Assembly (NCBI GenBank): GCA_977020255.1
Contig: CDROCS010002469.1
Location: forward strand, 124,001 to 188,000
Length of the DNA: 64,000 nt
DNA from: Obrimoposthia wandeli
Taxonomy: Eukaryota
Direction of reading: 5' to 3'
The translations under genes were made by a program, and so were the position numbers. This document shows, in pieces, positions 3,291-59,300 of the stretch; the first letter of the stretch is position 1, and every line of letters starts with the position of its first letter. The notes beneath the pieces are model-generated. The model was not told the origin of the DNA, searched no databases, and was given only the letters and a program-made list of their open reading frames with translations.

Positions 3291-3335
3291 CGTTAATCTC
3301 TTTTTTAATTTCAGTATTAACTGGCATATTCCAGT

Positions 3336-25186: not shown

Positions 25187-25279
25187 ACACCCTTGAATTG
25201 ATCGATTAGCATAATAGCTAGGTTTATCGGCTATCTGTAAACATTTTAGCTTTTAAAGATTTACAAAAATCTGTTTAGA

Positions 25280-30889: not shown

Positions 30890-30921
30890 TTCTATATAGC
30901 CGCCCTAAGTTATATTATTTA

Positions 30922-31467
30922 TTAGTTCAATTGAACCGAACCACCCTTAATACGATTCGCACCACTAGAGCGGCTGAGCAGATAACTACCGCGAATCAGA
31001 ATTTTCCCAGCTTTTGTGAGTGTAATGCTGGCCTTGCCACATTTTAAGGTGATGTCTTTTTTGGCTGACAATGTCACTGACTCTCCGTCTACTTTTACAT
31101 CTAATTTCACATCTAATGGATTTGAGTCAGTTTGTTCAAAAGGTACTGATAAAGGCGCTCGCCCTTGTATGCGCCCTATAATCAACGGTCTACTGATATC
31201 CCCGCATTCAAACAATAACGCCACTTCGCGACCGACATCTGCAGCTGAGAGCGACACGGTAGCGCGTGCAATCAATCCTGTTTCACTATGGTTTTGCGGA
31301 AAAACTACCAACGGTATACCGTTATTATCTATTCCCGCTAACACGCCAATCACTACATCTGACATACCTGTAATGCTTGGTTGTGTACTTTCTTGCGGTG
31401 CCCTTTGCTCTTGAGTGCTTTTCTCTTGCTCACTTTGAGGTAATTCAGGATCTAAGATGTCTGACAT
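30922..31467 (-). CDS. DUF6484 family protein (OB-fold-like N-part plus short VgrG-tip-like C-terminus)
   Basis: GREVALLFE.GD..RPLIIG, then I.L.CGKASITL.K.GKI.IRG....SRSSG.NRIKGGSVQLN; lies directly after vgrG. Confidence 0.82.
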   Translation of the reverse strand: MSDILDPELPQSEQEKSTQEQRAPQESTQPSITGMSDVVIGVLAGIDNNGIPLVVFPQNHSETGLIARATVSLSAADVGREVALLFECGDISRPLIIGRIQGRAPLSVPFEQTDSNPLDVKLDVKVDGESVTLSAKKDITLKCGKASITLTKAGKILIRGSYLLSRSSGANRIKGGSVQLN

Positions 31468-43660: not shown

Positions 43661-44677
43661 CTATCCATCACCTTCAACATTTTTTGCCTGCTTTAGCCCA
43701 TCTGGCGTGAGGTCAGCCACTATATCCATATAGCTTAGTGTCGAAAGACGCTTCGCCCGATTCATAAACAATGGAACGGGGCTTGATGGTTCGTTTTTCT
43801 GATAGTACTCGCAAATTTTATCCATCATTCTTGCTGCATCTTCTCTAGAATTAATCCCTAAATTGGTAGCAGCTTGAGGCGTTGAATCTACCTGCTCATT
43901 TTCGGCATTATTATCTATTACTGTTACCCCAAGCTCTTTACGCCCAGCTAAATAACCTTCAAATATATTTATGCAGCCATTAATAAGTTTTAATAGCGCC
44001 GATAAGTCTGGGGCCTGGGCATTACCAAGTTCTTTAATCAGTAATTGATCAATTTCTTGAACACTGTGAGCACTTTGTTGCAAAACTGCTTGGGATAACT
44101 GTAAAGCATCTACGCCAGACTCCATGAAAGCTGCGAGTATAGTGGTAGGTTCTGGAGGGTTGTCATGGCTATACGCCCCTTTAGATGCTTGAATGTCTCG
44201 ATAGCTGAATTTTCCTATCCCTTTACAGTCAACCAGCGGGACAACCATTAAGGCATTGAGCGTGAAACTGCGATCGCACAATGCGATTAAGGTGTTAATT
44301 CTCAAGGTGGGGTCATTATCGTCTTCAGGGTCTAGCTGTGGATGGATATTGTGCCAGTAGTTTTCTAGCAGTTTTTTTATGAGTAACAAGCTTTGTGCAA
44401 AACCCAGCAAACCATTGATCTGTAATTGAGCTTGCATTAAAACCAACGCGACCCGAAGATCTTTGGTTCTCGATAATAAAATAATGGCGTTTTTAGAGAC
44501 AGAACTCCAATTAACAGGCTCAACAGCTATTGAGGAATTACCCAGCACTTTCTCTTCGTTTTCTTGTGCCTCTAGAAACAGGCTCGTAAATAGAGGATCA
44601 TATTCCAAATCATCACCTGTGGGAGATTCTGACGATATTTCTTTTAATAATTCTTCTAAATTAAAACTACTGGACAT
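43661..44677 (-). CDS. tssA: T6SS TssA (ImpA N-terminal domain; short TssA1 type)
   Basis: G.DLEYDP, RTKDLRV, YW..IHPQLD..DD.DPT.RIN, INSREDA...DKICEYY..NEPSSPVP. Confidence 0.92.
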   Translation of the reverse strand: MSSSFNLEELLKEISSESPTGDDLEYDPLFTSLFLEAQENEEKVLGNSSIAVEPVNWSSVSKNAIILLSRTKDLRVALVLMQAQLQINGLLGFAQSLLLIKKLLENYWHNIHPQLDPEDDNDPTLRINTLIALCDRSFTLNALMVVPLVDCKGIGKFSYRDIQASKGAYSHDNPPEPTTILAAFMESGVDALQLSQAVLQQSAHSVQEIDQLLIKELGNAQAPDLSALLKLINGCINIFEGYLAGRKELGVTVIDNNAENEQVDSTPQAATNLGINSREDAARMMDKICEYYQKNEPSSPVPLFMNRAKRLSTLSYMDIVADLTPDGLKQAKNVEGDG

Positions 44678-45187
44678 AACACTCTTCTTAACTATATCAA
44701 GAACCCATTACTTATCGTAACTAGGCGTTAATCGTTAAGAAGACAAGGGATTAATTGGACGTCAAACGTGGACAAAAGGATAAACCACCAAACACCCGAG
44801 CCTTCTTTCCATGAAAACTACTCTGCAAGATATGTTATCAACTTATATTCTAATGATGATGGCAAAAGAGCGCGGATTAGAATAACGACAAGAAGAAGTA
44901 ATTATTAATATTAAACAAGCGTATTAACTATCTCTACTGTGTTAAATCTACACTAATGTTTATTTAAAAATCAATAGTATTGTTACATTGTTTTTTAATA
45001 TTTATACTCGATTTAATTATATTAAATTTCGCCGAAGCTATTTCACTTTAGTATTAAATATAACTTTCAAACAAGCCCTAACAAACACCAAGCTAGTAAT
45101 ATCGTTTGAATAACTTAACACATTAACCATAGTTAATAGCAGGATAAATAATAATCTAATTTAACATAAACAAAAGAGATTTTTATT

Positions 45188-46690
45188 ATGATTAGCGATA
45201 AAAACGATGATAAAAATAATGATAAAACCATCATATTAAATGATAATTTAGAACTTATAAATGCCGAAACCATTATCCAAAACCCTAATAGAGGGCAACC
45301 TGAAAACAAGCAGAACAGCTTCGATGCAACCAGCAATTGTTTTACAAGCAGCGACAAAACTTTGTTTAAAAGTAACGCTGCAGTTGTAGATAATTCAAAC
45401 AAAAAAATAGAAATTGGCAGTATTATCAATCAGCGTTTTGAGCTAACAAAATTACTCGGCAGTGGTGGCATGGGAATTGTTTTTCGTGCACTAGACAGGC
45501 GAAAACAAGAAGCAGAAGATATCGATCCATACATTGCGATTAAAATTTTAGGTGAAGAATTCAAAAAATACCCGCAAGCTTTTGTTGCATTACAAAGAGA
45601 GGCAAGAAAATCTCAGTCTCTGGCACACCCAAATATTATTACTGTGTATGATTTTGATCGCGATGGTGACTTATTTTATATGACAATGGAGGAACTAGAT
45701 GGCGAACCACTCACTGATTACATAAAATCTCACCCTAGTGGAACACCGATTGATAAAGCGCAAACGATGATTCTAGGTATTGCTCAAGGCCTTGCTCATG
45801 CGCATTCTAAAAACATTATCCACTCCGACTTAAAGCCTGACAATATTTTCGTTAGTAGCAAGGGCGCTATTAAAATACTCGATTTTGGGATTGCTAGAGC
45901 CGTCAATGATTTAAATGATACCCAAGATTCTATCAACTTTAACTCCCACAATAGCGTTAACACTCACACCGATACTTTTGATGCAGGCGAATTTGGCGGG
46001 TTAACCCCAACCTATGCAAGTGCTCAGATGTTTGCTGGTGAAGATCCACACCCAAGTGATGATGTTTATGCACTGGGTCTTATTAGCTATGAAATCTTAA
46101 GCGGTTACCATCCTTATAAAAGAGCCCCAGCAAATACATTAATAGATAAGCCTATTACTACAAAAAAATTAAAGGGAATAAAGGGTCACCAATGGCAAAC
46201 TATCGTAAGCTCGATAGCACTTAAAAGAGAACTGAGAATTGCCAATGCAGATATATTTCTAAAGAAGTTTAAAGGCACTTCCAACACCGTCAAATTCTTT
46301 GCGACAGCGCTGTTAGCCACTATTGTGGCACTTAGTTATAGCTTATTCCTAAAAGCGCCTAATATCGGTCCTGATATTGCATTTAGCGCCTTGGCAAAGC
46401 CTCTTCAAGCCCAGATAACTCAATTATTAGCAGAAGGTAGCCAAGCGCTTAAATTCAATGACTACAACGGCGCCCTACACTATTTTAATCAAGCTTATGA
46501 AATGCACCCTAAAAACCCCGATGCTATACTGGGGCTGGATAAAGTCGTCACTATTATACTTAAGAGAGTAGAAGCTCAGCCTAGCAATACACAGAGTAAT
46601 TTAACATTGATCAACACTTTACTTGAATACTCCGCACTGACCACTAACGCGCCTCTACTGGCAGTTAAACAACAGTTACAAGCTCCCTAG
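45188..46690 (+). CDS. ppkA: Membrane-anchored Ser/Thr protein kinase, probable PpkA of this T6SS
   Basis: LGSGGMGIVF, IAIK, HPNI, HSDLKPDN, DFG, TPTYAS, DVYALG; TM at about aa 371-389; TPR-like C-terminal tail; divergent from tssA; pppA, tagF and fha are in the same locus. Confidence 0.8.
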   Translation: MISDKNDDKNNDKTIILNDNLELINAETIIQNPNRGQPENKQNSFDATSNCFTSSDKTLFKSNAAVVDNSNKKIEIGSIINQRFELTKLLGSGGMGIVFRALDRRKQEAEDIDPYIAIKILGEEFKKYPQAFVALQREARKSQSLAHPNIITVYDFDRDGDLFYMTMEELDGEPLTDYIKSHPSGTPIDKAQTMILGIAQGLAHAHSKNIIHSDLKPDNIFVSSKGAIKILDFGIARAVNDLNDTQDSINFNSHNSVNTHTDTFDAGEFGGLTPTYASAQMFAGEDPHPSDDVYALGLISYEILSGYHPYKRAPANTLIDKPITTKKLKGIKGHQWQTIVSSIALKRELRIANADIFLKKFKGTSNTVKFFATALLATIVALSYSLFLKAPNIGPDIAFSALAKPLQAQITQLLAEGSQALKFNDYNGALHYFNQAYEMHPKNPDAILGLDKVVTIILKRVEAQPSNTQSNLTLINTLLEYSALTTNAPLLAVKQQLQAP

Positions 46691-46703
46691 TTCAATCAAT
46701 TTA

Positions 46704-48881
46704 TCACGATGTGGGGACAAAGAAAAAGTCGCCTACTTCATGGCCTGCGCCTTTAATTGCTTTGAACTCTGGTACTTGATTATAGCCAACAACTTTCGCG
46801 CCTTGGGATACCCTATCTCGCAATTTTAGAAACAATTGCGGGCCTGAGAGCACTTTTTTGTTTGACTTTAATACTTGCAAGAACGCTCTCGCAAACACTG
46901 AATTCCCCTGACCTGCATTATCTAACACGGGCTTATCACCTCCAGAGGACAAAATAAGTCGCGATTTTTTAGCTAGTTTATATTTTAAATATTCGTCAGA
47001 ATCATTTTGATCCGCTCCCATAAACAAATAACCTGGGGCACTGGACAACAACCCTGCATAGCAAGAATCTGCAACCACCAGCACTCTTTTAGCCTTTAGA
47101 CGGCTTAGATGGCGAGTAACAAACTCATTAGACACCCAAAAAGTATCAGCGGGAGGCTGCTCTGCATTTACAGGCAACCAATAACCTTCCTCTGCACCAC
47201 CATTACTTACTCGAGAACCATGCCCTGCATAAAATATAAGCAAATTATCATTCTCATTGAGTACTGAGTTCAAATTATTAATGGCCTTCATGACTTCAAT
47301 ATTATTTGCATCTAACAAAACCTGCACTGAGAACCCATATTTTGATTCAAGTAAATTAGCTACTTCCTGTGCGTCTCGCTTTGGCGTTGCTAAATTATCT
47401 AAACGACTATAATTTTGATTTCCTATCACTAATGCAAAATACCGACCAAACTTAATACCTTTGGAAGAAAGCGATTTTTTTTGTGAAGCGGTAGATGCTA
47501 TTCTCGATTTTTCCGTTGAAGGCTTCCTAAATACAGGAAGTTGGGTCAATTCTTTTTCATTGGATACTTTTTCCTGTTCCAAGGTTGATATTTTACCTTT
47601 CAGTAACGCCACTTCTGACTGAAGCTTTTCAGTGGCGACCTGTTGATCAGGCCTTGCCGCTAATTGCGCATTAGCGCTCACTTGTTCATCCAATTTTGAT
47701 TGCAGACCCTGCATTTTACCTGTCAGTAGCGCGACCTCTGACTCAAGCTTTCTAGTGGCGACCTGTTGATCAGGCCTTGCCGTTAATTGAGCATTAGCGC
47801 TCACTTGTTCATCCAATTTTGATTGCAATCCCAGCATTTTTCCTGTCAGTAGCGCGACCTCTGACTCAAGCTTTTCAGTGGTGACCTGTTGATCAGGCCT
47901 TGCCGCTAATTGCGCATTAGCGCTCACTTGCTCATCCAGTTTTGATTGCAAGCCCTGCATTTTACCTGTCAGTAACGCGAGCTCTGACTCAAGCTTTTCA
48001 GTGGCGGCCTGTTGATCAGGTCTTGCCGCTAGTCGCGTATTATCGCTCACTTGCTCATCCAATTTTGATTGCAAGCCTTGCATTTTACCTGTCATTAACG
48101 AGAGCTCTGACTCAAGCTTTTCAGTGGCGGCCTGTTGATCAGGCCTTGACACTAATTGCACATTAGCGTTCACTTGATCTTCCAATTTTGATTGCAAGCC
48201 CTGCACTTTGCTGCTCAGTGAACCGATTTGGGAACGCTTCGCATTGATCTGTCCCTGCAACCTAGTTCGTAGTGCCTGCTGTTCCCTAGTAGTGCTTTGC
48301 TGAAGAGCCTCTTGTTGATTATCAGCAGTAGACTGATATATCAGTGAATCTGTATTTAAGCCCCACGCTTTGCGGTACCAGTCCAACGCTATTTTTTTAC
48401 TTTTCGCGACCCCAAACCCCTGCTCATAAAGTGTTCCTAAATTAAATTGAGCCCGCGAATTTCCTTGATTGGCGGATTTTGTATACCATATAACAGCGGC
48501 TTCATAATTAGGGGTACCACCAATACCGCGTTCAAAAATTTCACCAACATTAGCTTGTGCTTGTGCGTTACCTATTTGCGCTGAAGGCATCCAGACATTC
48601 AATGATGATTTTAAGTTGGCTCTGTCATAAGCCACATATTCCCCCCCTCTAATCCTACAATCAGCAGTGGTCGTATTAATCGGCCTGCGGGGGGTGATAT
48701 AAGAAGCTTTATTTCCAAGTTGTCGCACTTGACCTGGGAGCAGGCAATCTACTACTTGTAAATCCGCAATCGTTGGATGAGACAGCTGACCACTCGCAGT
48801 CGGATTGCTTTGGCATCCTGTTAACAATAACGCCAGCAAAGAAATACTGGTTAATTTAAATATTGAATCTCTTAAGTCCAT
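46704..48881 (-). CDS. Lipoprotein with SEL1 repeats, repetitive coiled-coil stalk and C-terminal caspase-family (peptidase C14) domain
   Basis: Lipobox LLTGC; two SEL1 repeats (GNAQAQANVGEIFERG..., GNSRAQFNLGTLYEQG...); ALVIGN..Y..L..L.TP..DA; YAGHG and ADSCY give an intact His/Cys dyad. Confidence 0.88.
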   Translation of the reverse strand: MDLRDSIFKLTSISLLALLLTGCQSNPTASGQLSHPTIADLQVVDCLLPGQVRQLGNKASYITPRRPINTTTADCRIRGGEYVAYDRANLKSSLNVWMPSAQIGNAQAQANVGEIFERGIGGTPNYEAAVIWYTKSANQGNSRAQFNLGTLYEQGFGVAKSKKIALDWYRKAWGLNTDSLIYQSTADNQQEALQQSTTREQQALRTRLQGQINAKRSQIGSLSSKVQGLQSKLEDQVNANVQLVSRPDQQAATEKLESELSLMTGKMQGLQSKLDEQVSDNTRLAARPDQQAATEKLESELALLTGKMQGLQSKLDEQVSANAQLAARPDQQVTTEKLESEVALLTGKMLGLQSKLDEQVSANAQLTARPDQQVATRKLESEVALLTGKMQGLQSKLDEQVSANAQLAARPDQQVATEKLQSEVALLKGKISTLEQEKVSNEKELTQLPVFRKPSTEKSRIASTASQKKSLSSKGIKFGRYFALVIGNQNYSRLDNLATPKRDAQEVANLLESKYGFSVQVLLDANNIEVMKAINNLNSVLNENDNLLIFYAGHGSRVSNGGAEEGYWLPVNAEQPPADTFWVSNEFVTRHLSRLKAKRVLVVADSCYAGLLSSAPGYLFMGADQNDSDEYLKYKLAKKSRLILSSGGDKPVLDNAGQGNSVFARAFLQVLKSNKKVLSGPQLFLKLRDRVSQGAKVVGYNQVPEFKAIKGAGHEVGDFFFVPTS
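47591..48208 (-). repeat. Five 123-bp (41-aa) coding tandem repeats within the caspase lipoprotein
   Basis: Marker TGTTGATCAGG recurs at 47641, 47764, 47887, 48010 and 48133 (period 123). Confidence 0.95.
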
Positions 48882-49032
48882 ACTTTCACCCTTGGCATAC
48901 TAGTATTCGATCCGTTTAATTTTGAGGCACACTACCCAATACTCTTGCAAATGACTATTATCACAGTATTCACTAATTTAGTGCTGCTATCATCCATTTA
49001 CTACCACTGCTAATTAAGTTTAAAAGAGGTTA

Positions 49033-49854
49033 TTGATTTTGCGGTTTTTATTTATCAAATTTATTGTATTGTGCATGGCGACCATCGCTAGCTTTAGTTG
49101 CACAAACACAAAGCAGATATCGCAAGCAATTACCAACCAATACCAATTGTTTGAAGGCAAAATAATCACAGAAATATACCAGCATCGCTATTTTAGTAAT
49201 CAGGCTAAAATAGAATCTCGCGTGCACATTTATATAGGCTCTGACGGCACCCCATGGATAAAAGGAAAATGGCAAGCTGCCGACCCAACCCCTTTAAATC
49301 CATTAGCATTGAAGCTAATGGGGGTCGATCAAAACGCAGCGATTTATTTAGGTCGTCCTTGCTATTTCGAAACTACAAAACAATCTTATTGCCACCCGAG
49401 TCTTTGGACAGATGCACGCTACTCTGAAGAAATAATTGCCAGTATGTCTCTGGCTATAAAACAGCTTGTAAGCTCTGAAACCGATATCGTTTTAATTGGC
49501 TATAGCGGGGGTGCCGCTATAGCAGCAATTCTGGCAGATAAATTAGACAACGCTATCGCTCTAATAACTATTGCAGGAAATTTAGATACTCAATTATGGA
49601 CAACACATTTCAATTTATTACCTTTAACAAAATCGGTCAATCCTGCAACCTATATATATTCAAAAAAACCTATACAAACTATTCATTTAACCGGCAATAA
49701 AGATTTTATAGTCCCATTGAAAATAACCAACTCTTTCGTCTCTAAACGAGGTGGTAAATTATGGATTTTTAATGAGAATAACCATAGCTGCTGCTGGTTA
49801 ATTCAATGGTCTGATATATTAAAAAAAATAGAGAGAAACTTATTTTTAAAGTAA
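49033..49854 (+). CDS. Alpha/beta hydrolase family lipoprotein
   Basis: Hydrophobic N-terminus ending ASFSC, HIYI..DG.PW, YLGRPCY, GYSGG nucleophile elbow, AGNLD, G.KD..VP, H.CCW. Confidence 0.75.
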   Translation: MILRFLFIKFIVLCMATIASFSCTNTKQISQAITNQYQLFEGKIITEIYQHRYFSNQAKIESRVHIYIGSDGTPWIKGKWQAADPTPLNPLALKLMGVDQNAAIYLGRPCYFETTKQSYCHPSLWTDARYSEEIIASMSLAIKQLVSSETDIVLIGYSGGAAIAAILADKLDNAIALITIAGNLDTQLWTTHFNLLPLTKSVNPATYIYSKKPIQTIHLTGNKDFIVPLKITNSFVSKRGGKLWIFNENNHSCCWLIQWSDILKKIERNLFLK

Positions 49855-50024
49855 TATTAATAAAAACTTTGACTTGACTTAAAGACCAGCTGTGTATATT
49901 AATTATCATCCCTTTTTAAAACAACTCTAAATTTTTGGGTATAATTTATTAGAGCTAATAAAACGATTTTGATAATCTTTAATAAAACAGTGAATGCTAA
50001 ATTATTAATCAAGGAGCGATTAAA

Positions 50025-51923
50025 ATGGTTCGTGCATACTCTTGTAGCTCAAGGTATAGATTAAATAGTAATGTTTGTTTTTTATTACTATTTCTTGTAC
50101 TCTTTTTACAGTCATTAATTGCCTCAGCCAGCAACGTCAGTGTTTCCTCACAGTCATTAAATTTTGGCGATACTGAAGTTGGCAGCTATAAAGACATTCA
50201 TTTATACGTTACACGCAATGATAATGATATAGCCGTAAGTTGCCAGGCAATAGGCTGCAACTCCACTACTGTCACGCTGAGTGGCGCTAACAACATCTAT
50301 TCTATTTCGGATACTAATTGTACATCCCCTCTTACATTTACTAACCCTAGCTGTTACTACAACATTAGGTTTACTCCGACTACAACCGCTATTTCCAATA
50401 GCACAATAAATCTATCTTACGGCCCGGATGGTTCAGATACTATAGCACTAACAGGAAATGGTATTCTTTCCGCAGCAGATCAAGCTGCGCTAGAAGAAGC
50501 GGCGAGACTAGCGGCTGAAGAAGAAGCAGCAAAACTTGCGGCTGAAGAAGAAGCAGCAAAACTTGCGGCTGAAGAAGAAGCAGCAAAACTTGCGGCTGAA
50601 GAAGAAGAAGCGAGAGTAGCGGCTGAAGAAGCGGCACCTCCACCGGTAGACTTCCTAGACCCTTTTAGTGGAGGACAAGAAAATAATAGCAGTACCGGAC
50701 AGGCCATTATTACCACATGTACTAGCGGTAATGCATCTGCAGAATTACAAAGAGATTGTAATTCTCTTGTTCAATCAGCTAAAAATAACGACTCACAGAC
50801 TACATCTGCGTTAGACCAAATCACTCCTGAGACTGCGACTAAAAGCACTCAAATTACACAGCAAGGCGCTACCACTCAAGCTAGAAATATCACTTCAAGA
50901 ATGGTCCAATTACGCTCAGGAGCGACTGGTTTATCTTTTCAAGGACTCAGTCTCAATCTACAAGGAAAAAATTTACCAGTAGGGAAAATCGCACAGAGCA
51001 GCCTTCAATCATTAGGTATGGGCGCCAGTGCTGATGACACTTTTAGTAACTCTAAAATCGGTTTATTTTTTAGTGGACAAATAGCCAGAGGAGAACGGGA
51101 CCAGTCAGCACTAGAATCCGATTTAGAATACAAAACTTATGGGCTAACTGCTGGCTTAGATTATCGATTTAGCGATAAACTATTTTTGGGCGCGGCTGTT
51201 GGTGTTTTAGATTCAAGTGCAGAACTAAATAACAGCACCGCAGATTTAGATACCCGTGGTTACAGTTTATCAATGTATGGAAGCTACTATTTGCCAAATA
51301 ATTTTTTCTATGACTTTTCAATAACTTATGGTAAAAACAACTTTAATCAAAACCGTAAACTTAATTATGAATTGGACGGCACTACCGTTAATCAAAACTT
51401 TAGTGCAGATTATGATGGTAATTACTATTCTGTACTTTTAGGTGCTGGTAAGGATTTTCATAAAGGCTCTTGGTCATTTGGCCCCCGAGCGAAGTTCGAA
51501 TATACCCGCTCTAAAACAAATACCGCTAAGGAGGAGGCCTCAAATACCACAGGCCTAGGAAGTGGCTGGGTAACTCAGATCGATGAAAACAGTCAGACAT
51601 CAATGATATTGCAAGCAGGAGCACGTGCCTCATATGCACATAGTGTAGATTGGGGAGTGCTGATACCTTATGCACAGTTGGATTTAGTACATGAGTTTAA
51701 GCAAGATGCCCAATTGATCAATGCACATTTCCTGCAAGATCCCGCTTCAACACAAATACAGATAAAAACTGACAACCCAGATCGTAATTTCTTAAAACTG
51801 AATATAGGCAGTTCTGCTCAGTTTAAAAATGGTGTATCAGGATTTGCTAACTACTCTACTGTCTTATCTAATAGTGTGTGGGATAGCCATAGCTTAAGCT
51901 TGGGTGTTAGATTCGAGTTTTAG
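50025..51923 (+). CDS. Autotransporter (type Va) with Ig-like ASH/choice-of-anchor-D passenger and charged helical linker
   Basis: Signal peptide; SLNFGDTEVG...CYYNIRFTPT...ALTGNG domain; beta-barrel pattern (GLTAGLDYRF, LIPYAQLD..HEF) ending in LGVRFEF. Confidence 0.85.
   Translation: MVRAYSCSSRYRLNSNVCFLLLFLVLFLQSLIASASNVSVSSQSLNFGDTEVGSYKDIHLYVTRNDNDIAVSCQAIGCNSTTVTLSGANNIYSISDTNCTSPLTFTNPSCYYNIRFTPTTTAISNSTINLSYGPDGSDTIALTGNGILSAADQAALEEAARLAAEEEAAKLAAEEEAAKLAAEEEAAKLAAEEEEARVAAEEAAPPPVDFLDPFSGGQENNSSTGQAIITTCTSGNASAELQRDCNSLVQSAKNNDSQTTSALDQITPETATKSTQITQQGATTQARNITSRMVQLRSGATGLSFQGLSLNLQGKNLPVGKIAQSSLQSLGMGASADDTFSNSKIGLFFSGQIARGERDQSALESDLEYKTYGLTAGLDYRFSDKLFLGAAVGVLDSSAELNNSTADLDTRGYSLSMYGSYYLPNNFFYDFSITYGKNNFNQNRKLNYELDGTTVNQNFSADYDGNYYSVLLGAGKDFHKGSWSFGPRAKFEYTRSKTNTAKEEASNTTGLGSGWVTQIDENSQTSMILQAGARASYAHSVDWGVLIPYAQLDLVHEFKQDAQLINAHFLQDPASTQIQIKTDNPDRNFLKLNIGSSAQFKNGVSGFANYSTVLSNSVWDSHSLSLGVRFEF
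50493..50636 (+). repeat. 27-bp coding tandem repeat (AAEEEAAKL), three perfect copies plus degenerate flanks
   Basis: GCGGCTGAAGAAGAAGCAGCAAAACTT at 50511, 50538 and 50565; variants at 50592 and 50619. Confidence 0.95.
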
Positions 51924-52042
51924 CAATTTAATTTTCGACAACAATAGCAAGCTTAGGTCGCTGTACTTGGTTTGCTGATCATGAATTTTCGCTACCATAA
52001 ATGCCTTTTTTTATATAGTCATCATTTCAAAAAAAAGTCAAT

Positions 52043-52646
52043 AACCCACTTTTTTAGAAGGTGGGTTTGCCTAACATTCTTTGAAGTGGGGCGATACTTG
52101 CCATCTTAAAAGGCAAGCGGGTTATCCCGTCATTCTATTAAAAGTCTAGCTTCTCTTGACGCTTTTCAAGCTTCCCTTGGTGTTCCAAATATTCCCTAAT
52201 CATCTCAGCATTCAAGCCAACTCCATATACACAGTAAAAATGATTCCTCCAATACAGCCTCTTTTTTATATGTAGAAAATAATTGAAGACTCTAATTGCA
52301 GCCCTTCCTTTTAAAGCTCCCATCAAACTTGAGATGAATTGTTTGGATGGTACTTGATCGACAAATGGGCATGATAGCTGCACGCTTATTTCCGTGATTT
52401 CAAATTTTAAGCAACTGCTATAAACTTGCATATAATCAGATTGCTTCTTGCTCAACTGATTCCATTTAAAACCTATACCCGTATTTTGGCACCCAAATCA
52501 TCCGGTATTCGCAATGCCATAAATCGTGCGATAATTTTGTAACTATACTCATGGTATTTTCCTTAATCAGTTATGGGGATAACCAATTAAGTTAATATAA
52601 GCAGAACCTTTCTAAGGTGACCACGTCTTCAGGGCGTGACTTTAGA
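52043..52646 (-). mobile_element. tnpA: Degenerate IS200/IS605-family element (tnpA pseudogene with terminal hairpins)
   Basis: From ATG 52552: MSIVTKLSHDLWHCEYRMIWVPKYGYRF*, then frameshifted pieces (HAHL HUH motif out of frame, LMGALKGRAAIR, YWRNHF, IREY..HQ). Hairpins at 52043-52067 (AACCCAC..GTGGGTT), at about 52097-52117 (CTTGCC..GGCAAG) and at 52611-52646. Confidence 0.85.
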
Positions 52647-52880
52647 ATCTTTATAAAACCGGAAATGGCGAATATTCACCTCCCGAGTTGCTATTATATT
52701 TCGCTTGAAGCCATTAACTATTTCTTTATAATTACTAGTTGAGAAATACGTTCAGAGACTGCAATTTTCTGAGTATTCAATGACAAACACTCGCTTTGTG
52801 AACTTTAGCAATAAACGTCATGGCGCCCCTTTTTTTGAACTTTATGTTTAATACATTGCCTTATACTGGATTTTGAAATT

Positions 52881-52897
52881 TCTTCAGTTACTGAAGA
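52881..52897. promoter_or_regulatory. Perfect palindrome TCTTCAGT-T-ACTGAAGA upstream of the metal-efflux operon
   Basis: Seen directly about 45 nt before the Cys-rich ORF; regulator unknown. Confidence 0.4.
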
Positions 52898-52942
52898 TCT
52901 ATTTGTGTGTTGAATTTTGCTAGCGGCTAATGAGTTTTGTAA

Positions 52943-53314
52943 GTGATGTCAAAAACGTTGAAAAAATTGATTATAGTGCTGTATATCTTAACGACGCTGT
53001 TTTCTCAACTGTATTCAATCTCTGCAACAGCTGGTATTCATACACAACAAATGTCGCTATCAGCCCCTCAACATGCGCCTTCTGCTGGCATCAAATGCAG
53101 TTCCTCAATGACTGAAAATTGCTCCAATACTGTGATGACAGAAAATTGCCTTTGTTGCGATGCCAATTGTGTTTCTATGCAGTGCTCGACTGCTTATCCA
53201 ACAAGCTCTTTTGATTTTCACTTTCCGTATGGTACTTTTTCAAGCACCCGCTATGTCTGTGCGGCAGTATCTCCAACAACTTCCCTACCGTATCGCCCCC
53301 CTATAGTTCTATAA
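52943..53314 (+). CDS. Small exported Cys/His/Met-rich protein (DUF2946/CopL-like), leader of the cus operon
   Basis: Signal-like N-terminus, C..C...C.CCD..C..M.C cluster and terminal PYRPPI motif typical of proteins preceding heavy-metal RND operons. Confidence 0.65.
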   Translation: MMSKTLKKLIIVLYILTTLFSQLYSISATAGIHTQQMSLSAPQHAPSAGIKCSSSMTENCSNTVMTENCLCCDANCVSMQCSTAYPTSSFDFHFPYGTFSSTRYVCAAVSPTTSLPYRPPIVL

Positions 53315-53420
53315 CGCTACCAATCACCACCGCAATAATCGATTTTGGGAGCTTTCCTTTTGCGAGAACGCGTGGCTTTTCTTTTTAATTCAACTCGAAT
53401 TACTTCCCGTAGGGGGATTT

Positions 53421-54821
53421 ATGCAATCTATTTCTGTGCGACTGGGTGTCGTACTCAGTTTTTGTTTATTTAATTTAGTCGGCACCACTACTATGGCTGC
53501 TGAGCAAAAAAGCAGCAAATTAACTTTAAATATGGCGTTAAATATAGCGCTTAATAAAGATGAATGGCAAAACAGTAGCAGGCTTACACAAGAAGCTGTA
53601 CGCGAACGAGCGGTTGCATCGGGGCAATTACCAGATACTAAATTAACTGCCACATTGGCAAATTTAGCCACTGACACACTGCGCTTTAATCAAGAGCGGA
53701 TGACGCAAATACAGCTCAGTGCCAGTCAAGTATTCCCTCGGGGTGATACCTTAGCGCTGCGTGAAACGCGTGGCCGTTTAGATAGCGAGCGTCAGCTTTT
53801 CCAACGCCAATTACGCTTAGCTAAAATTGGTTTAGAAGTCACAACGCTGTGGCTAAATAGCTTAAAAGTGCGACGCAGCATTGAATTGATCAAAAAGAGC
53901 AGACCGCTATTTGATCAACTATCAGAACTCACACTTGCCAGCTATGCCGCGGTAACGTCCGACACTCAGCAGCAAGATATTGTACGAGCACAACTTGAGC
54001 GCACATTACTAGATGATAGATTGAGTTTACTTACACTACAGTTAGCCAAGCTAGAGCAGCAACTCACTGGGTGGTTAATTTCAGCTGATGGGAACTGGCG
54101 CACACCTACTGGAAAGCGCATTTATGATAATAAATTGCCGCAATTAGCGCTACTGCAACCTACTCCTACCCCCCAAACAATTACTCACTCAGCGGGCACT
54201 TTGGCCAACAGGTTCTTGCATCACCCAATGATTGAGTTATTAGATAAAACCATTGTGCGTGATAAAACCAATATTGAATTAGAGCGCCAAGGATTCAAAC
54301 CACAATGGGGAATCAAACTTGGTTACGGTTATCGAAAGCGTGATCCTAATGGCGTGAATCGCTCTGATCTTGTCAGTGTAGGTGTCAGCATGGATTTTCC
54401 GTTATTTTCTAAGCAGCGTCCGCGCAGCAATGTGCGTGCAGCCACTTTAGAGCGAGATGCCAATATCAGTGAGAGGTTACTGTTACTGCGCGACATGAAT
54501 ACCAAATTCAATGCGCTGTTAGTACAACAAAGTACATTAACACAACGCGCGCAGCTTTATCGCCGTGCAGTGCTGCCACAAATGCAACAACAAGCTCAGG
54601 CCTCACTTAATGCTTACACCGCAGATAATGGCAACTTTAGTGAAGTTGTACGCGCACGCATTGTGCAGCTAAACGGACGTATCGATGCACTTGACATCGC
54701 AGTAGCACAGCAACAACTTATAGCTCAGATGAACTATTTATTAGCCACCACTGAGCAGCCAGTGCTACTAACTGAACTGAACTCAGCTCTTCCTCAAATA
54801 CAGCGCAGGATTAATCGTTAA
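53421..54821 (+). CDS. cusC: TolC-family outer membrane factor of heavy-metal RND efflux (CusC-like)
   Basis: Signal peptide, GQLPD, MTQ..L..SQ.FPRGD.L, YGYR, D.VSVGVSMD.PLF; precedes cusB/cusA. Confidence 0.8.
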   Translation: MQSISVRLGVVLSFCLFNLVGTTTMAAEQKSSKLTLNMALNIALNKDEWQNSSRLTQEAVRERAVASGQLPDTKLTATLANLATDTLRFNQERMTQIQLSASQVFPRGDTLALRETRGRLDSERQLFQRQLRLAKIGLEVTTLWLNSLKVRRSIELIKKSRPLFDQLSELTLASYAAVTSDTQQQDIVRAQLERTLLDDRLSLLTLQLAKLEQQLTGWLISADGNWRTPTGKRIYDNKLPQLALLQPTPTPQTITHSAGTLANRFLHHPMIELLDKTIVRDKTNIELERQGFKPQWGIKLGYGYRKRDPNGVNRSDLVSVGVSMDFPLFSKQRPRSNVRAATLERDANISERLLLLRDMNTKFNALLVQQSTLTQRAQLYRRAVLPQMQQQAQASLNAYTADNGNFSEVVRARIVQLNGRIDALDIAVAQQQLIAQMNYLLATTEQPVLLTELNSALPQIQRRINR

Positions 54822-54823
54822 AG

Positions 54824-56365
54824 ATGAATAATACAATAAAGAATATGAGCTTAATGCTCAGTGGCGCGCTTATAGGTTCAATATTAATCGTTTATATCCT
54901 GCCTTATATCCAATCTTATTTAAGGGTTGTAAGTGCTATGGAGCAAGGCATTACGTCAAGTAATAATGAACCTGAGCCTCTTTACTGGGTAGCCCCAATG
55001 GATGCTAATTTTCGTCGTGATAAGCCCGGTTTATCGCCGATGGGAATGGATTTAGTACCTTTCTATCCTAGCGGAGATAATAGTAGCCCTGGCACTATTA
55101 GCGTTTCGCCTGAAGTTGTTAACAACTTAGGTGTGAAGCTGGCGAGTGTGCTGCAAAAACCATTGCAATTGCAGGTCAATACCGTCGGTTATGTTAAATA
55201 TAATCAAGATAAAATGGTACATGTGCACCCAAGAGTTGAGGGATGGTTAGAAAAAGTTTATGTAACCTCAGCCGGTGAACCGGTGAAAAAAGGCCAAGCA
55301 CTATATGAGCTGTATTCCCCAGAATTGGTCAATGCACAAGAAGAGTTTCTATTTGCACTACAACGCAACGATAAGAGATTAATCAATGCAGCGCAGCGCC
55401 GATTGCGCTCATTACAATTACCTGAAAAAGCCATTCGCCAATTACGCAAAGATCGCCAGTTACAACAGAGTGTGACCTTTTATGCTCCTATAAGCGGCGT
55501 AGTAGAAAATTTTTCGATGCAGGCAGGTTTTTTTGTAAAGCCTGGTAAAATGCTGATGTCGATTGTCTCACTAGACCAGGTTTGGGTGGAAGCCCAAGTA
55601 TTTGAGCGCCAGGCAAGCTTGATAGAGCGCGGTGCACCTGTCAGCGTAAAACTCGACTACCTACCTAATAGAGTGTGGCGCACCACTGTCGATTATATCT
55701 ACCCAACCCTTGATAAAATGAACCGTACTTTAAGAGTGAGGTTACGCTTAGATAATCAAGATCTAGTACTCAAACCTAATATGTACGCCGATGTACAAAT
55801 TGACGTACCACAAACAGAACCGGTTTTAAGTGTACCGCGAGAAGCACTGATTCGTGTTGGCAATCAAGACCGCATTGTACTATCACTGGGGCAAGGACGT
55901 TTTAAATCCATCGCGGTGACTGCTGGGCGGAGTGACTCACAGCGTATTGAGATACTTGAAGGTTTAAAAAAGAATGAAGTAGTGGTGAATTCTGCACAGT
56001 TTTTGCTAGATTCTGAATCAAGTAAAACATCGGACTTTAAGCGTATTGACGTAGCAGGTAAGCAAGAAAACACTGCGCAAATAAAAGATGAAACATCAGA
56101 TGCAGTATGGGTATTAGCGCAAGTCGATCAGCAAATACGTGATCAAATGCAAGTAAAATTAACTCACCAAGCAATCCCCCAATGGCAGTGGCCCGTAATG
56201 ACCATGAACTTCAAACTCGATAAGAAACTTAACTTTGATAAGTTAGGTATCGGTCAAGAGTTAGCTGTAAAACTGGCACGAGGAGAAGATAATCAATATC
56301 GATTATTAGACACCGCACCTGCCGATCAAATAAGTAAAATGATGAAACAGGAGTCACAGCCATGA
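54824..56365 (+). CDS. cusB: CusB-type periplasmic adaptor with N-terminal heavy-metal-binding motif and C-terminal CusF-like domain
   Basis: YWVAPMD..FRRDKPG.SPMGMDLVP, LYSPELVNAQEE, YIYP.LD...RT, LKPNMYA, FLLDSES; tail H.AIP.W.WP.MTM.F. Confidence 0.88.
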   Translation: MNNTIKNMSLMLSGALIGSILIVYILPYIQSYLRVVSAMEQGITSSNNEPEPLYWVAPMDANFRRDKPGLSPMGMDLVPFYPSGDNSSPGTISVSPEVVNNLGVKLASVLQKPLQLQVNTVGYVKYNQDKMVHVHPRVEGWLEKVYVTSAGEPVKKGQALYELYSPELVNAQEEFLFALQRNDKRLINAAQRRLRSLQLPEKAIRQLRKDRQLQQSVTFYAPISGVVENFSMQAGFFVKPGKMLMSIVSLDQVWVEAQVFERQASLIERGAPVSVKLDYLPNRVWRTTVDYIYPTLDKMNRTLRVRLRLDNQDLVLKPNMYADVQIDVPQTEPVLSVPREALIRVGNQDRIVLSLGQGRFKSIAVTAGRSDSQRIEILEGLKKNEVVVNSAQFLLDSESSKTSDFKRIDVAGKQENTAQIKDETSDAVWVLAQVDQQIRDQMQVKLTHQAIPQWQWPVMTMNFKLDKKLNFDKLGIGQELAVKLARGEDNQYRLLDTAPADQISKMMKQESQP

Positions 56366-59300
56366 TTGGCGCTATTATTCGCTGGTCAGTGAACAATAGG
56401 CTGATGGTATTACTCGCAGCGTTAATGTTAGTAACTGGTGGTTTGTATTCACTGCAAAAAACACCATTAGATGCGATTCCCGATTTATCTGATGTGCAAG
56501 TAATTATTAAAACCAGTTATCCGGGGCAAGCACCGCAAGTAGTTGAAGATCAAGTCACTTACCCGCTGACCACCGCGATGTTGTCGGTGCCAGGTGCTCA
56601 AACGGTACGCGGATTCTCATTTTTTGGTGATTCTTATGTATATGTTATTTTTGATGATGACACTGATATGTACTGGGCACGCAGTCGAGTATTAGAGTAT
56701 CTCAGCCAAGTTATCCCCTCATTACCCGCCGCCGCTAAACCGCAGTTAGGACCCGATGCGACTGGTGTTGGTTGGGTTTATTTATATGCGTTAGTCGATA
56801 AAAGTGGCAAACACGATATTAGCGAATTGCGCAGTTTACAAGACTGGTTTCTGAAGTATGAGCTACAAACGGTCGCGGGTGTTTCAGAAGTTGCCGCTAT
56901 TGGCGGTTTAGTAAAGCAGTATCAAGTGAGCGTTAACCCTGAAAAATTACGCGCCTATAACCTGCCACTCTCACATATTCAAACAGCGATTAAACGCGGT
57001 AACCAAGAAATTGGTGCATCCGTCATTGAGATGGCAGAAGCAGAGTATATGGTACGTGCCAGCGGCTATATCCAAAGCCGTGAAGATCTGGAAAACATCC
57101 CACTAGGATTAGATGATAGCGGCACTCCACTGCTACTTAAAGACGTTGCTGACATTAATATCGGCCCACAAATGCGCCGTGCAGTGGCAGAGCTAAACGG
57201 TGAAGGTGAAGTGGCTGGTGGCGTCGTTGTAATGCGCTTTGGAGAAAACGCTCAGCACACGATTGATGGTGTGAAAGCTAAACTTGAGTCATTAGAAAAA
57301 GGGCTGCCTGAAGGCGTTGAAATTGTCACGGTATACGATCGCTCCGGGTTAATTGGCCGCGCTGTTGATAACCTCTGGACCAAGCTACTTGAAGAGTTCG
57401 TGGTAGTTGCATTGGTGTGTGTCGCCTTTTTATTCCACGTACGTTCCTCTTTAGTTGCTATTATTTGCTTGCCAGTAGGTATCTTGACTGCGTTTATTGT
57501 TATGTACATGCAAGGCATTAATGCCAACATTATGTCGCTAGGAGGTATCGCAATAGCCATCGGCGCCATGATTGATGGTGCTATCGTCATGATAGAAAAC
57601 ATGCACAAGCATATGGAGCGAACTCCATTAACCAACGAGAACCGGTGGCGAATTGTCGCTGAATCTGCGAGTGAAGTGGGTCCAGCACTGTTCTTTAGTT
57701 TGATGATTATTACGGTGAGCTTTGTGCCAGTGTTTACGCTAGAGGCACAAGAGGGAAAAATGTTCGCGCCATTAGCTTTCACTAAAACCTACGCGATGGC
57801 GGCATCCGCAGCTCTTGCGATTACGCTAGTACCGGTATTAATGGGTTACTTCATACGTGGAAAAGTACTGCCTGAGCACAAAAACCCGCTCAATAAAGTG
57901 CTCTCAGCAATGTATTTCCCGGTTTTAAGAAAAGCACTTAAGTATCCAAAAATAACGCTACTGAGCGCCGTGGCGATTTGTTTGCTTGGTCTTTGGCCGC
58001 TGGATAAAATCGGCAGTGAATTTATCCCCCCATTAGATGAAGGAGATTTAATGTATATGCCCACCACTTATCCGAGTATATCCATTGGTGAAGCACGCCA
58101 ATTACTGCAGCAAACAGATAAACTAATTCGCAGCTTGCCTGAGGTAGAAACAGTGTTCGGCAAAGCCGGTCGTGCAGAAACTGCCACAGACCCAGCTCCA
58201 CTGACCATGATTGAAACCTTTATTCAGTTTAAGCCGCGCAGCGAATGGCGAGATGGCGTTACCCCCGCAAGCTTGAAAAAAGAGCTAGATGCGCTAGTAA
58301 ATATCCCAGGTATTACTAATGCTTGGGTAATGCCGATCAAAACCCGTATTGATATGCTAGCCACCGGTATCAAAACACCTGTGGGTATTAAAATAGCGGG
58401 GCCGGACCTGAAAACAATTCAGCAAATTGGTCAGCAACTTGAAACCATTGTAAAAGCGATACCCGGTACTGCCTCTGTTTATTCAGAGCGAGTTGCTGGT
58501 GGCCGCTATATTAAAGTGGATATCAAGCGGCTTAAAGCGGCGAGATTTGGTCTTAATATTGCTGATGTGCAACAGGTAATATCGGTGGCCATTGGTGGCA
58601 TGAACATCTCAAAAACCATTGAAGGGCTAGAGCGTTACCCCATTAATTTACGTTACCCTCAGCGTTTTCGTAACTCACCGGAGCAACTCAATCTACTGCC
58701 TATCGTCACGCCTGACGGCCAGCGAGTTCCTTTAGGTGACATTGCAGATATTTATATCGAAGAGGGGCCGCCTGGGATAAAAAGTGAAAATGCGCGATTG
58801 AACGGCTGGACACTGATAGATATTGAAGGGATGGATATAGGCAGCTATGTTGAAAATGCTCAGCAAGTCGTCGCTGAGCAGCTGAAACTGCCGACCGGTT
58901 ATTCTATTAATTGGTCCGGCCAGTTTGAGTATATGCAACGCGCGAAAGCTAAGCTCATGTATGTAGTACCTTTGACCCTACTAATCATCGTAATTTTACT
59001 CTTCATTAATTTTCGCAATGTAGCAGAAGTGGCTATTATCATGGGTACACTACCGTTGGCGATGGTGGGCAGTATCTGGCTGATGTATCTTGAAGGGTTT
59101 AACTTCTCTGTGGCGGTGGGTGTTGGTTTCATTGCCCTCGCAGGTGTTGCGGTCGAAATTGGCGTCATTATGCTGGTATATTTAAACCAAGCCTACAAAG
59201 CTATGCTAGATCAATGCAAAGCAGCTAACACATCCCCTACAACCACACTGGTTCGTGAAGCAGTGTTGCAAGGAGCAGGGCTCAGAGTACGCCCAGTGAT

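Follow-up and report, generated by a model that had tools for sequence, protein, structure and literature searches.

An envelope gene module with a kinase and a caspase-like lipoprotein joined to a type VI secretion locus

A locus in which four genes for envelope proteins abut tssA of a type VI secretion system (T6SS) raises the question of whether these genes belong to the secretion system, and whether they might supply the periplasmic input that its threonine-phosphorylation pathway needs. An earlier note, made from sequence alone, proposed that an inner-membrane Hanks kinase, a caspase/SEL1 lipoprotein, a hydrolase lipoprotein and a surface autotransporter form a relay, in which the autotransporter senses contact or damage, the caspase-like protease passes the signal on by scaffolding or cleavage, and the kinase phosphorylates TssL or Fha. 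We examined the locus in a 64-kb stretch of DNA, referred to here as the window, and in its relatives in other genomes. The four open reading frames are real, and the observation made in the note is confirmed apart from some details of domain assignment. Its interpretation is only partly supported. Table 1 lists the features by position in the window; the four genes are designated KIN, CASP, HYD and AT.

Table 1. Coordinates of the module genes, the adjoining T6SS features and the outer boundary, in positions of the 64-kb window.
Feature	Position	Strand	Parts and remarks
Module kinase (KIN), 500 aa	45188-46690	+	Cytoplasmic N-tail with [DE]-K/A-T-x-[VIL] repeats; Hanks kinase domain (residues 85-327, nt 45440-46168; non-RD, HSD); transmembrane helix (about residues 369-389, nt 46292-46354); periplasmic TPR-like tail (residues 390-500, nt 46355-46687)
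Caspase-like lipoprotein (CASP), outer-membrane location inferred, 725 aa	46704-48881	-	Lipobox Cys23 (nt 48813-48815); conserved Cys-pair N-domain (residues 36-100); Sel1 repeats (about residues 100-175); helical repeat spacer (183-446); C14 domain (480-720) with His554 (nt 47220-47222) and Cys607 (nt 47061-47063)
Tandem repeat, 123 bp x5, 90% identical	47590-48209	-	Encodes the 41-aa helical repeats of the CASP spacer
Lipoprotein alpha/beta hydrolase (HYD), 273 aa, TTG start	49033-49854	+	Cys23; Ser158 (nt 49504-49506); Asp224; His251; conserved Cys110/Cys120 and Cys253-Cys254
Type Va autotransporter (AT)	50025-51923	+	Signal peptide; small beta-sandwich-like passenger (about nt 50130-50430); Ala/Glu-rich 27-bp x5.2 repeat (50492-50631); beta-barrel (residues 348-632, nt 51066-51920)
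Intergenic region, 510 bp	44678-45187		Divergent, shared by the tssA operon and KIN; a possible site of co-regulation
tssA	43661-44677	-	First gene of the tssABC-hcp-tagJ-tssEFG-clpV-vgrG block
fha (TagH)	20540-22396	-	Presumed substrate or adaptor of the kinase
tagF and pppA	12820-14412	-	tagF (13714-14412); pppA, a PP2C phosphatase (12820-13605); far end of the cluster, no ppkA follows pppA
Truncated IS200-type Y1 transposase ORF	52138-52455	-	Outer edge of the module

The kinase matches the Pfam Pkinase model at E=1.4e-36 over residues 85-325, and in an alignment of module kinases K119, D214, N219 and D232 are invariant, so that the catalytic Lys, the catalytic-loop Asp and Asn, and the DFG motif are intact. 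A single hydrophobic helix separates this domain from a conserved C-terminal tail of 110 residues that, scanned alone, gives TPR_19 at E=1.2e-5; the bitopic topology was read from the sequence rather than from a dedicated predictor. As the note had stated, there is no vWA domain.

The caspase-like protein has the lipobox LLTGC, with a Cys at least 90% conserved, and matches Sel1 (E=7e-17) and Peptidase_C14 (E=9.5e-27; 94.6 bits against a cut-off of 21.4). The His/Cys dyad is invariant in 25 homologues, and profile comparison with PDB sequences found Sel1 proteins, MALT1, metacaspases including metacaspase-4, and GSU0716. What the note described as a long coiled coil is, in an AlphaFold2 (AF2) model, a helical region broken about every 41 residues, and the tandem repeat found by TRF accounts for the length of the protein in this lineage, since homologues typically have 540 residues or so.

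In the hydrolase, the lipobox Cys and the Ser-Asp-His triad, with its nucleophile elbow GYSGG, are invariant in 37 orthologues, although the lipobox in the window is the atypical SFSC. Pfam searches over the members, an AF2 model with pLDDT 95, and Foldseek comparison, which returned esterase/lipase-type folds at TM about 0.55-0.6, agree on a generic alpha/beta-hydrolase fold, and no specific subfamily could be assigned. Neither CASP nor HYD has Asp at position +2, from which sorting to the outer membrane is inferred by the E. coli rule.

The autotransporter has a signal peptide, a short passenger, and a C-terminal barrel recognized by PF03797 (E=2e-49, 169 bits, residues 348-611) and by TIGR01414. 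The Ig(ASH) identity that the note gave to the passenger has only sub-threshold support: a choice-of-anchor D domain scores E=4e-5 here, and 1.5e-8 and 1.7e-7 in two orthologues, all below the curated cut-off, while Pfam gives no hit.

The adjoining T6SS is complete. tssA was recognized by ImpA_N, fha by FHA and T6SS_FHA_C domains, and tagF and pppA by Pfam and NCBIfam models. The transposase ORF that bounds the module matches Y1_Tnp at E=4.3e-7, but only over profile positions 57-121 of 121. The window contains no Hanks kinase other than KIN. A tblastn search with the FGE-sulfatase protein of L097, one of two sister T6SS clusters (L097 and L098), found no TagR-like gene in the window, and no ABC-transporter hit appeared among the ORFs scanned. 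A promoter scan of the region between tssA and the kinase gene gave nothing above chance.

We next asked whether the four genes belong together. In 80 species-level loci, HYD, AT and KIN are the three most conserved neighbours of CASP. Of 47 loci with at least 8 kb on both sides, HYD is present in 41, AT in 31, and KIN in 26; at least two of the three are present in 40, and none in 0. Flanking genes are unrelated housekeeping genes, and both flanks and gene order vary, so the four genes form a true module. A relative of the caspase-like lipoprotein is encoded in at least 294 species. Membership is not fixed, however. Steroidobacteraceae keep the hydrolase, autotransporter and caspase genes with no kinase within 10 kb, so the trio must have a kinase-independent function, and the closest relative of the window's lineage (L001-L004) lacks the autotransporter.

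Is the module then a T6SS device? The note had named occurrence mostly without T6SS as grounds for abandoning its proposal, and at the level of the locus this is what is found: 43 of the 47 fully flanked loci have no T6SS gene within 10 kb. Only 3 of the 47 have three or more T6SS genes within that distance, and a fourth, in Marinobacter, also lies in a T6SS locus. Moreover, at least one member of the Cellvibrionaceae, the family holding many of the unlinked modules, namely Teredinibacter turnerae, has a T6SS with its own PpkA. The module is not T6SS-specific, and its dedication to T6SS is not supported.

The linkage nevertheless recurs. T6SS-linked members sit at three separate places on the kinase and caspase trees, and involve two T6SS subtypes. 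In Marinobacter suaedae the module lies inside a T6SS locus of another subtype, in the order pppA-fha-tssJKLM-tagF-tssABCC-EFG-clpV, then BIG-BIG-AT-CASP-HYD-KIN, then PAAR-vgrG-hcp, where BIG denotes large Ig-repeat lipoproteins; there is no other Hanks kinase in the locus, and a histidine kinase / response regulator pair lies upstream. An uncultured gammaproteobacterium (L042) also has the kinase and caspase genes beside T6SS genes. In two relatives (L095 and L096), the cluster ends in the same way as here, with tagF-pppA followed by unrelated genes. The sister clusters L097 and L098, in contrast, carry a canonical in-cluster kinase, fused to a TagR-like FGE-sulfatase domain.

The window's kinase aligns over its full length, periplasmic tail included, with module kinases from non-T6SS loci. 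Most module kinases form one clade (39 rows, SH-aLRT 96), to which the window's kinase belongs, and a single clade holding all module kinases is not rejected (AU p=0.45). In-cluster T6SS kinases fall outside this group, so that KIN, while it shares with PpkA (TagE) the intact kinase domain, the bitopic topology, and the company of Fha and PppA (TagG) in a T6SS cluster, is not found to be orthologous to the in-cluster PpkA kinases of related systems. Of the seven nearest non-module kinases examined, five are T6SS-linked PpkA-type kinases.

The explanation we favour, though only somewhat more likely than not, is that an autonomous envelope module, spread vertically and horizontally in Gammaproteobacteria and extended in some lineages by BIG lipoproteins, was recruited as the kinase and sensor arm of the T6SS threonine-phosphorylation pathway. 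Its hub would be an outer-membrane-anchored, catalytically competent orthocaspase-like protease, whose Sel1 and N-terminal parts would sit near the outer membrane beside the esterase-like lipoprotein and the autotransporter barrel, and whose helical spacer would project the protease domain towards the inner membrane, where the kinase exposes its small TPR-like domain. In the lineage of this genome (Nitrincolaceae / Neptunomonas-like), the module has been joined to an H1-like T6SS that keeps Fha, PppA and TagF but has lost, or never had, an in-cluster PpkA, and the same happened independently in Marinobacter suaedae. In both, the module kinase would serve as the T6SS threonine-phosphorylation kinase, and the three envelope proteins would set its activity from the periplasmic side, in place of TagQRST/TagR-type inputs. 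The analysis establishes the domain anatomy, the conservation of catalytic residues, the co-occurrence of the genes, the recurrent linkage to T6SS, and the absence of any other kinase from the sequence at hand, although a kinase elsewhere in the genome cannot be excluded from a 64-kb window. It is by inference alone that the kinase phosphorylates Fha or TssL and is needed for Hcp secretion, that CASP contacts the kinase tail, that CASP, HYD and AT act upstream and in the order the note proposed, and that the protease is active, with an Arg/Lys specificity inferred only from its DSC motif, and acts on the kinase by cleavage or by binding. Against this explanation stand the many unlinked loci, the separate PpkA of T. 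turnerae, the Steroidobacteraceae trios without a linked kinase, and the lack of the autotransporter in the closest relative; in addition, no basic residue is invariant in the kinase tail, so there is no obvious orthocaspase site. Precedent exists for outer-membrane partners that bind the PpkA periplasmic domain, namely TagQ/TagR and TssW.

An alternative, which we consider unlikely, is that the module is a self-contained envelope system whose kinase has other targets, and that it has merely landed at the edge of T6SS islands. The T6SS would then be controlled by TagF/PppA and a kinase encoded elsewhere, or its Fha would work without phosphorylation, as in Vibrio cholerae. The prevalence of unlinked loci favours this view, the IS200 relic is consistent with insertion at an island edge, and one locus (L014) has a PP2C phosphatase next to CASP with no T6SS nearby, so the module can have its own phosphatase. 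T6SSs with Fha but no PpkA exist, according to a 2026 review of T6SS accessory genes. However, the module directly abuts T6SS core genes in three separate lineages and two subtypes, and in Marinobacter it lies within the locus. By our rough estimate, direct adjacency to a T6SS core gene by chance is of order 0.1-0.2% per genome, and three independent cases among about 45 lineages are therefore very unlikely. Both the window's locus and that of Marinobacter suaedae, furthermore, keep PppA, a phosphatase with no purpose without a kinase.

Somewhat less likely still is that CASP, HYD and AT mature surface proteins, processing, releasing or anchoring the autotransporter passenger and any BIG lipoproteins, with the kinase an optional feedback output; in T6SS loci only the kinase would matter for firing, and the caspase would not be a signal relay. 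In the Steroidobacteraceae trios the autotransporter passengers are much larger (780-1059 aa), BIG proteins (1150-1560 aa, with Big_9, cadherin and PKD domains and a lipobox) follow AT in 15 loci, both enzymes keep intact active sites, and clan CD peptidases include surface-protein sortase-like enzymes such as PorU and GPI8. Against this, KIN is directly adjacent to CASP in 21 loci, sometimes when HYD or AT is missing, and the kinase tail is as conserved as the catalytic domain, which argues for a specific periplasmic partner. The window's lineage, moreover, has no BIG gene.

The strong form of the note's idea, that the module is a dedicated T6SS accessory everywhere and acts in trans, where unlinked, on a T6SS encoded elsewhere in the genome, is very unlikely, because although the kinase catalytic domain is closest to T6SS PpkA-type kinases (37-43% identity) and at least some Cellvibrionaceae and Marinobacter species have T6SSs, that of T. 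turnerae has its own PpkA, the Steroidobacteraceae trios have no kinase nearby, and in Cellvibrionaceae the module occupies a conserved housekeeping site between queG and nnr/yjeF.

The TagQRST-PpkA-PppA-Fha1 pathway of the Pseudomonas aeruginosa H1-T6SS shares tagJ, tagF, pppA and fha in similar blocks, a bitopic Hanks kinase with a periplasmic sensor domain, outer-membrane lipoproteins as presumed input, and a PP2C antagonist, but here TagR, the ABC-like TagS/T and a vWA domain were not found, the kinase lies at the tssA end rather than next to pppA, the presumed input proteins differ, and the input module exists on its own in most carriers. TssW of the TssW-PpkA-Fha axis in Acidovorax citrulli (PMC12607579) and RtkS, which acts with PpkA in Serratia, are likewise lineage-specific envelope proteins encoded next to ppkA that act on its periplasmic domain to position or trigger T6SS assembly; they are single proteins with no enzymatic domains reported, confined to T6SS clusters, while here two conserved enzymes and a beta-barrel occur mostly outside T6SS loci. 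No caspase, Sel1 or autotransporter accessory appears in the 2026 review. With prokaryotic metacaspases and orthocaspases (MEROPS C14B), CASP shares the C14 fold, the dyad, and a DSC motif before the catalytic Cys, as in Arg/Lys-specific metacaspases; a Sel1 plus metacaspase architecture was catalogued in 6% of bacterial metacaspases (PMC3501461), but the papers found attach no function or gene context to it, and CASP is predicted to be exported and lipid-anchored, and is embedded in a conserved module with a Hanks kinase. The Rcs envelope-stress sensor, in which the RcsF lipoprotein works with an OMP barrel and signals across the periplasm to inner-membrane IgaA, is a functional analogy only, with no sequence relationship; the output here is a Hanks kinase rather than a phosphorelay, and two hydrolytic enzymes are involved.

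A bolder possibility, compatible with the evidence but unlikely, is that a periplasm-spanning, lipid-anchored orthocaspase proteolytically switches the Hanks kinase on or off in response to events at the outer membrane or cell surface read by the esterase and the autotransporter. This would be a bacterial protease-gated receptor-kinase pathway, existing as a general envelope-damage or contact sensor in hundreds of Gammaproteobacteria and plugged repeatedly into T6SS firing control.

Two questions become approachable in culturable, non-pathogenic marine bacteria such as Marinobacter suaedae chi1 and Neptunomonas isolates. As to what activates the T6SS threonine-phosphorylation pathway outside Pseudomonas and Serratia, these data offer a defined four-gene candidate to replace TagQRST/TagR-type sensors. 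As to what bacterial orthocaspases do, a large family with almost no assigned functions, here one is predicted to be exported, keeps an invariant active site, and is genetically tied to a kinase whose presumed output, in Hcp secretion, sheath foci and prey killing, is easily scored. In this view, T6SS loci can capture a pre-existing envelope signalling module, conserved and hitherto uncharacterized, rather than evolving a dedicated one.

The observation in the earlier note held up: the four open reading frames that it described as adjacent envelope genes beside tssA are present at exactly the positions that it assigned. Coordinates of these genes, and of the other features discussed, are collected in the table. 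On one side the group abuts tssA, and on the other lies a truncated IS200 transposase ORF, just beyond which is a CusCBA-type RND efflux operon that is unrelated to the four genes.

Coordinates of features in the window and in compared loci (handles beginning with L)
Sequence	Positions	Strand	Feature	Details
Window	45188-46690	+	Kinase (KIN)	500 aa; Hanks kinase domain at residues 85-325; single hydrophobic helix at about residues 369-389; C-terminal tail of 110 residues
Window	45188-45440		Kinase N-terminal tail	Thr-centred repeats
Window	46704-48881	-	Caspase-like lipoprotein (CASP)	725 aa; lipobox LLTGC; helical region at residues 183-446
Window	47590-48209		In-frame tandem repeat in CASP	123-bp x5; 41-aa helical units
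Window	49033-49854	+	Lipoprotein hydrolase (HYD)	273 aa; TTG start
Window	50025-51923	+	Autotransporter (AT)
Window	50492-50631		In-frame tandem repeat in AT passenger	27-bp x5.2; AAEEEAAKL
Window	12820-44677		Complete T6SS
Window	23930-31467		T6SS effector region
Window	27668-28732		PAAR-like GHH2 HNH-nuclease toxin
Window	53421-59496		CusCBA-type RND efflux operon	OEP; HlyD_D23 with CusF and HMBD domains; ACR_tran
L014	about 3133-3950		PP2C phosphatase	Directly after CASP
L042	2375-5166		Subtilase and Slam-like barrel	3-6 kb upstream of the KIN-CASP pair
L048	10001-14524		Divergent CASP	HYD- and AT-like genes nearby
L088	7470-13649		T6SS cluster of Azospirillum argentinense Az39 plasmid p3	tssA, Ser/Thr kinase, PP2C, 'caspase family protein'
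L097	10802-20741		T6SS cluster with kinase fused to FGE-sulfatase domain
L098	1-1168		T6SS cluster with kinase fused to FGE-sulfatase domain

The kinase matches the Pfam Pkinase model with an E-value of 1.4e-36, lacks a vWA domain, and ends in a tail that gives only a weak match to TPR_19 (E=1.2e-5 when scanned alone). All module kinases are non-RD kinases, with H-S/C/A-D in the catalytic loop, which in other systems usually means regulation other than activation-loop phosphorylation. Nearly all of them carry one to eight copies of a Thr-centred repeat, [DE]-[KA]-T-x-[VIL] (for example DKTIIL, DKTRVKI, DATVVST), in the cytoplasmic tail that precedes the kinase domain, the only exception being the kinase of L042, a locus from an uncultured gammaproteobacterium. 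Some canonical T6SS kinases have one to three similar motifs. These are possible phospho-acceptor or docking sites, but the motif is not the classical pTxx[ILD] FHA motif.

The caspase-like lipoprotein contains Sel1 repeats (E=7e-17) and a Peptidase_C14 domain (E=9.5e-27), in which His554 and Cys607 are invariant across 25 homologues; the closest solved relatives of the protease domain are MALT1, metacaspase-4, and GSU0716. The long coiled coil of the earlier note is instead a helical region, broken about every 41 residues in an AF2 model and encoded by the tandem repeat. This spacer is expanded only in the T6SS-linked clade to which the window belongs (proteins of 689-766 aa against about 540 aa elsewhere). 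The AF2 model of the full-length protein, built with 25 sequences, reached a mean pLDDT of only 68, and its conserved N-domain (residues 23-88) scored below 50, so no fold could be assigned to that domain.

In the hydrolase, the lipobox Cys, Ser158 (GYSGG), Asp224, and His251, together with two further cysteines, are invariant in 37 orthologues. The AF2 model is confident (pLDDT 95) but resembles only generic esterases and lipases, with TM about 0.55-0.6, and a sequence search of the PDB gave nothing. The autotransporter has a clear barrel domain (PF03797, E=2e-49), while the Ig/ASH passenger proposed in the earlier note is supported only by sub-threshold matches to the choice-of-anchor D beta-sandwich domain, here and in two orthologues. 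Rfam and tRNA scans of the window found nothing, and a promoter and terminator scan of 44400-53500 gave results not above chance, and hence uninformative.

The neighboring T6SS is complete, and encodes pppA, tagF, tssM, tssL, tssK, and fha; tssJ; an effector region; and vgrG, clpV, tssG, tssF, tssE, tagJ, hcp, tssC, tssB, and tssA. The effector region contains a TIGR02270 HEAT-repeat protein and a DUF5636 protein, a 310-aa ORF with no family hit (likely immunity) that overlaps the 3' end of the nuclease toxin gene, a KAS-like PRK06147 protein, a DUF2169 protein, and a DUF6484 protein. The locus therefore has the whole threonine-phosphorylation set except a kinase next to pppA. A tblastn search found a single Hanks kinase in the window, the module kinase itself, and no FGE-sulfatase (TagR-like) gene, and no ABC pair was found among the ORFs scanned, which gives no sign of TagQRST in the window, although a kinase encoded outside the 64-kb window cannot be excluded.

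The caspase/Sel1 lipoprotein belongs to a large, tight family, with more than 1600 hits that are typically about 540 aa long. A scan of one genome per species found relatives in at least 294 species, and we analyzed 80 loci, each with 10 kb of flank on either side. Clustering of all ORFs in these loci showed that the three most conserved neighbors of CASP are exactly HYD, AT, and KIN (62, 55, and 48 of 88 loci). Among 47 loci with at least 8 kb on both sides, HYD is present in 41, AT in 31, and KIN in 26; at least two of the three are present in 40, and none in 0. Gene order varies, the main layouts being HYD- AT+ CASP+; HYD- CASP+ KIN-; and HYD- CASP+ AT+ BIG+ KIN-, where BIG denotes a very large Ig/cadherin/PKD-repeat protein. 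Fifteen loci add one or two such proteins, which are themselves lipoproteins. The flanks are unrelated housekeeping genes such as queG, yjeF/nnr, SDR, and GDPD. In nine loci from Cellvibrionaceae and unclassified gammaproteobacterial MAGs (L015, L017, L025, L027, L028, L033-L035, and L041), the module sits at one conserved chromosomal site, between queG and nnr/yjeF, and in most of these a PilZ gene and a DUF1631 gene follow the kinase. A divergent CASP (34% identity) with HYD- and AT-like genes nearby in L048, a MAG labelled Candidatus Rokubacteria, suggests that the trio of CASP, HYD, and AT occurs outside Proteobacteria, if the MAG assignment is right. The four genes are a module. The window kinase aligns over its whole length, periplasmic tail included, with module kinases from loci that have no T6SS; by descent, therefore, it is a module component and not an orthologue of in-cluster PpkA. 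Strict monophyly of module kinases against canonical T6SS kinases, however, was neither recovered in every tree nor rejected, as long branches interfere.

The module is not T6SS-specific. Only L008 and L010 (the window's own Nitrincolaceae / Neptunomonas lineage), L042, and L062 have T6SS genes nearby, while 43 of 47 fully flanked loci have none. Teredinibacter turnerae, a member of the family that holds many unlinked modules, has an H1-like T6SS with its own PpkA. Steroidobacteraceae keep HYD-AT-CASP with no kinase within 10 kb. In L014, which has no T6SS genes within 10 kb, a PP2C phosphatase 44% identical to the window's PppA follows the caspase lipoprotein, so the module can carry its own phosphatase. 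The locus of L042 lacks HYD and AT, but has a subtilase and a Slam-like (surface lipoprotein assembly modulator) barrel in its vicinity. The earlier note had set predominance of the genes away from T6SS as a condition that would count against it, and at the level of loci that condition is fulfilled; its interpretation, that these genes relay envelope signals to T6SS activation, is thus only partly supported.

Four observations nevertheless argue that the link is functional where it does occur. First, T6SS linkage maps to three separate positions on both the kinase and the caspase trees, and involves two T6SS subtypes. Second, in relatives of the window (L095 and L096) the cluster likewise ends with tagF-pppA followed by unrelated genes, while the next most similar T6SS clusters, outside the window's own clade (L097 and L098), instead carry an in-cluster PpkA kinase fused to a TagR-like FGE-sulfatase domain. 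One of these kinases is a 1579-aa protein with TPR repeats, followed by a separate FGE-sulfatase protein and a ShlB/TPS two-partner secretion pair. This pattern looks like a non-orthologous replacement of the sensor kinase. Third, walking along the contig of Marinobacter suaedae, we reconstructed a locus in which a histidine kinase / response regulator pair is followed by pppA-fha-tssJ-K-L-M-tagF-tssA-B-C-C-E-F-G-clpV, then by BIG-BIG-AT-CASP-HYD-KIN, and then by x-PAAR-DUF6931-vgrG-hcp. Here the module lies inside the T6SS locus, and its kinase is again the only Hanks kinase beside PppA, Fha, and TagF, which makes this an independent replicate. Fourth, the catalytic domain of the module kinase is closest to T6SS-linked PpkA-type kinases, at 33-43% identity, and five of the seven nearest plasmid or chromid hits are in T6SS clusters. 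By our rough estimate, direct adjacency to a T6SS core gene by chance is about 0.1-0.2% per genome, an inference rather than a computed statistic. Three independent cases among roughly 45 lineages are therefore not plausibly accidental.

A further candidate for a caspase associated with T6SS was rejected. In the alphaproteobacterial T6SS cluster of Azospirillum argentinense Az39 (L088), the 'caspase family protein' beside ppkA-pppA has no signal peptide, is fused to SH3 and MORN repeats, and has lost both His and Cys of the dyad (YYAGM; no Cys). This cytoplasmic-looking pseudo-caspase is not orthologous to the window's protein, but it is a second caspase-fold gene beside ppkA-pppA.

While gene content, conservation, and linkage were observed directly, the mechanism we propose is for the most part inferred, and all functional statements, including proteolysis, ester hydrolysis, membrane placement, and kinase control, rest on comparative genomics. 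The domain order of CASP is lipid anchor, conserved Cys-pair N-domain, Sel1 repeats, helical spacer, and then protease. In this view the N-domain and Sel1 part would lie at the outer membrane, beside the HYD lipoprotein and the AT barrel, and the protease domain would sit at the far end of the spacer, towards the inner membrane, where the kinase would expose its small conserved domain. Both enzymes keep invariant active sites, so catalysis, and not mere scaffolding, is under selection. We therefore favor an outer-membrane-anchored protease/esterase/barrel assembly that sets the activity of the kinase; in T6SS-linked lineages the kinase would then drive Fha-dependent assembly, opposed by PppA and TagF. 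Precedents for outer-membrane partners that bind the PpkA periplasmic domain are TagQ/TagR and TssW. The protease might cleave the kinase tail, the autotransporter, or something else, and no basic residue is invariant in the kinase tail. The trio also exists without a kinase, so it must have a kinase-independent role as well, a possibility covered by a rival reading in which these proteins serve in surface-protein maturation.

A 2026 review of T6SS accessory genes lists no caspase, Sel1, or autotransporter component, and our literature searches found no link of any of the three to T6SS or Hanks kinases. The Sel1 + metacaspase architecture was counted in a 2012 survey (PMC3501461), which assigned it no function or gene context. 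That survey also noted frequent metacaspase / FGE-sulfatase fusions, which is suggestive, because FGE-sulfatase is the sensor domain of the canonical T6SS kinases seen in L097 and L098. The module itself appears to be undescribed. Where it is joined to a T6SS, we interpret the combination as a T6SS threonine-phosphorylation pathway, of a kind already known, with a different, captured envelope input.
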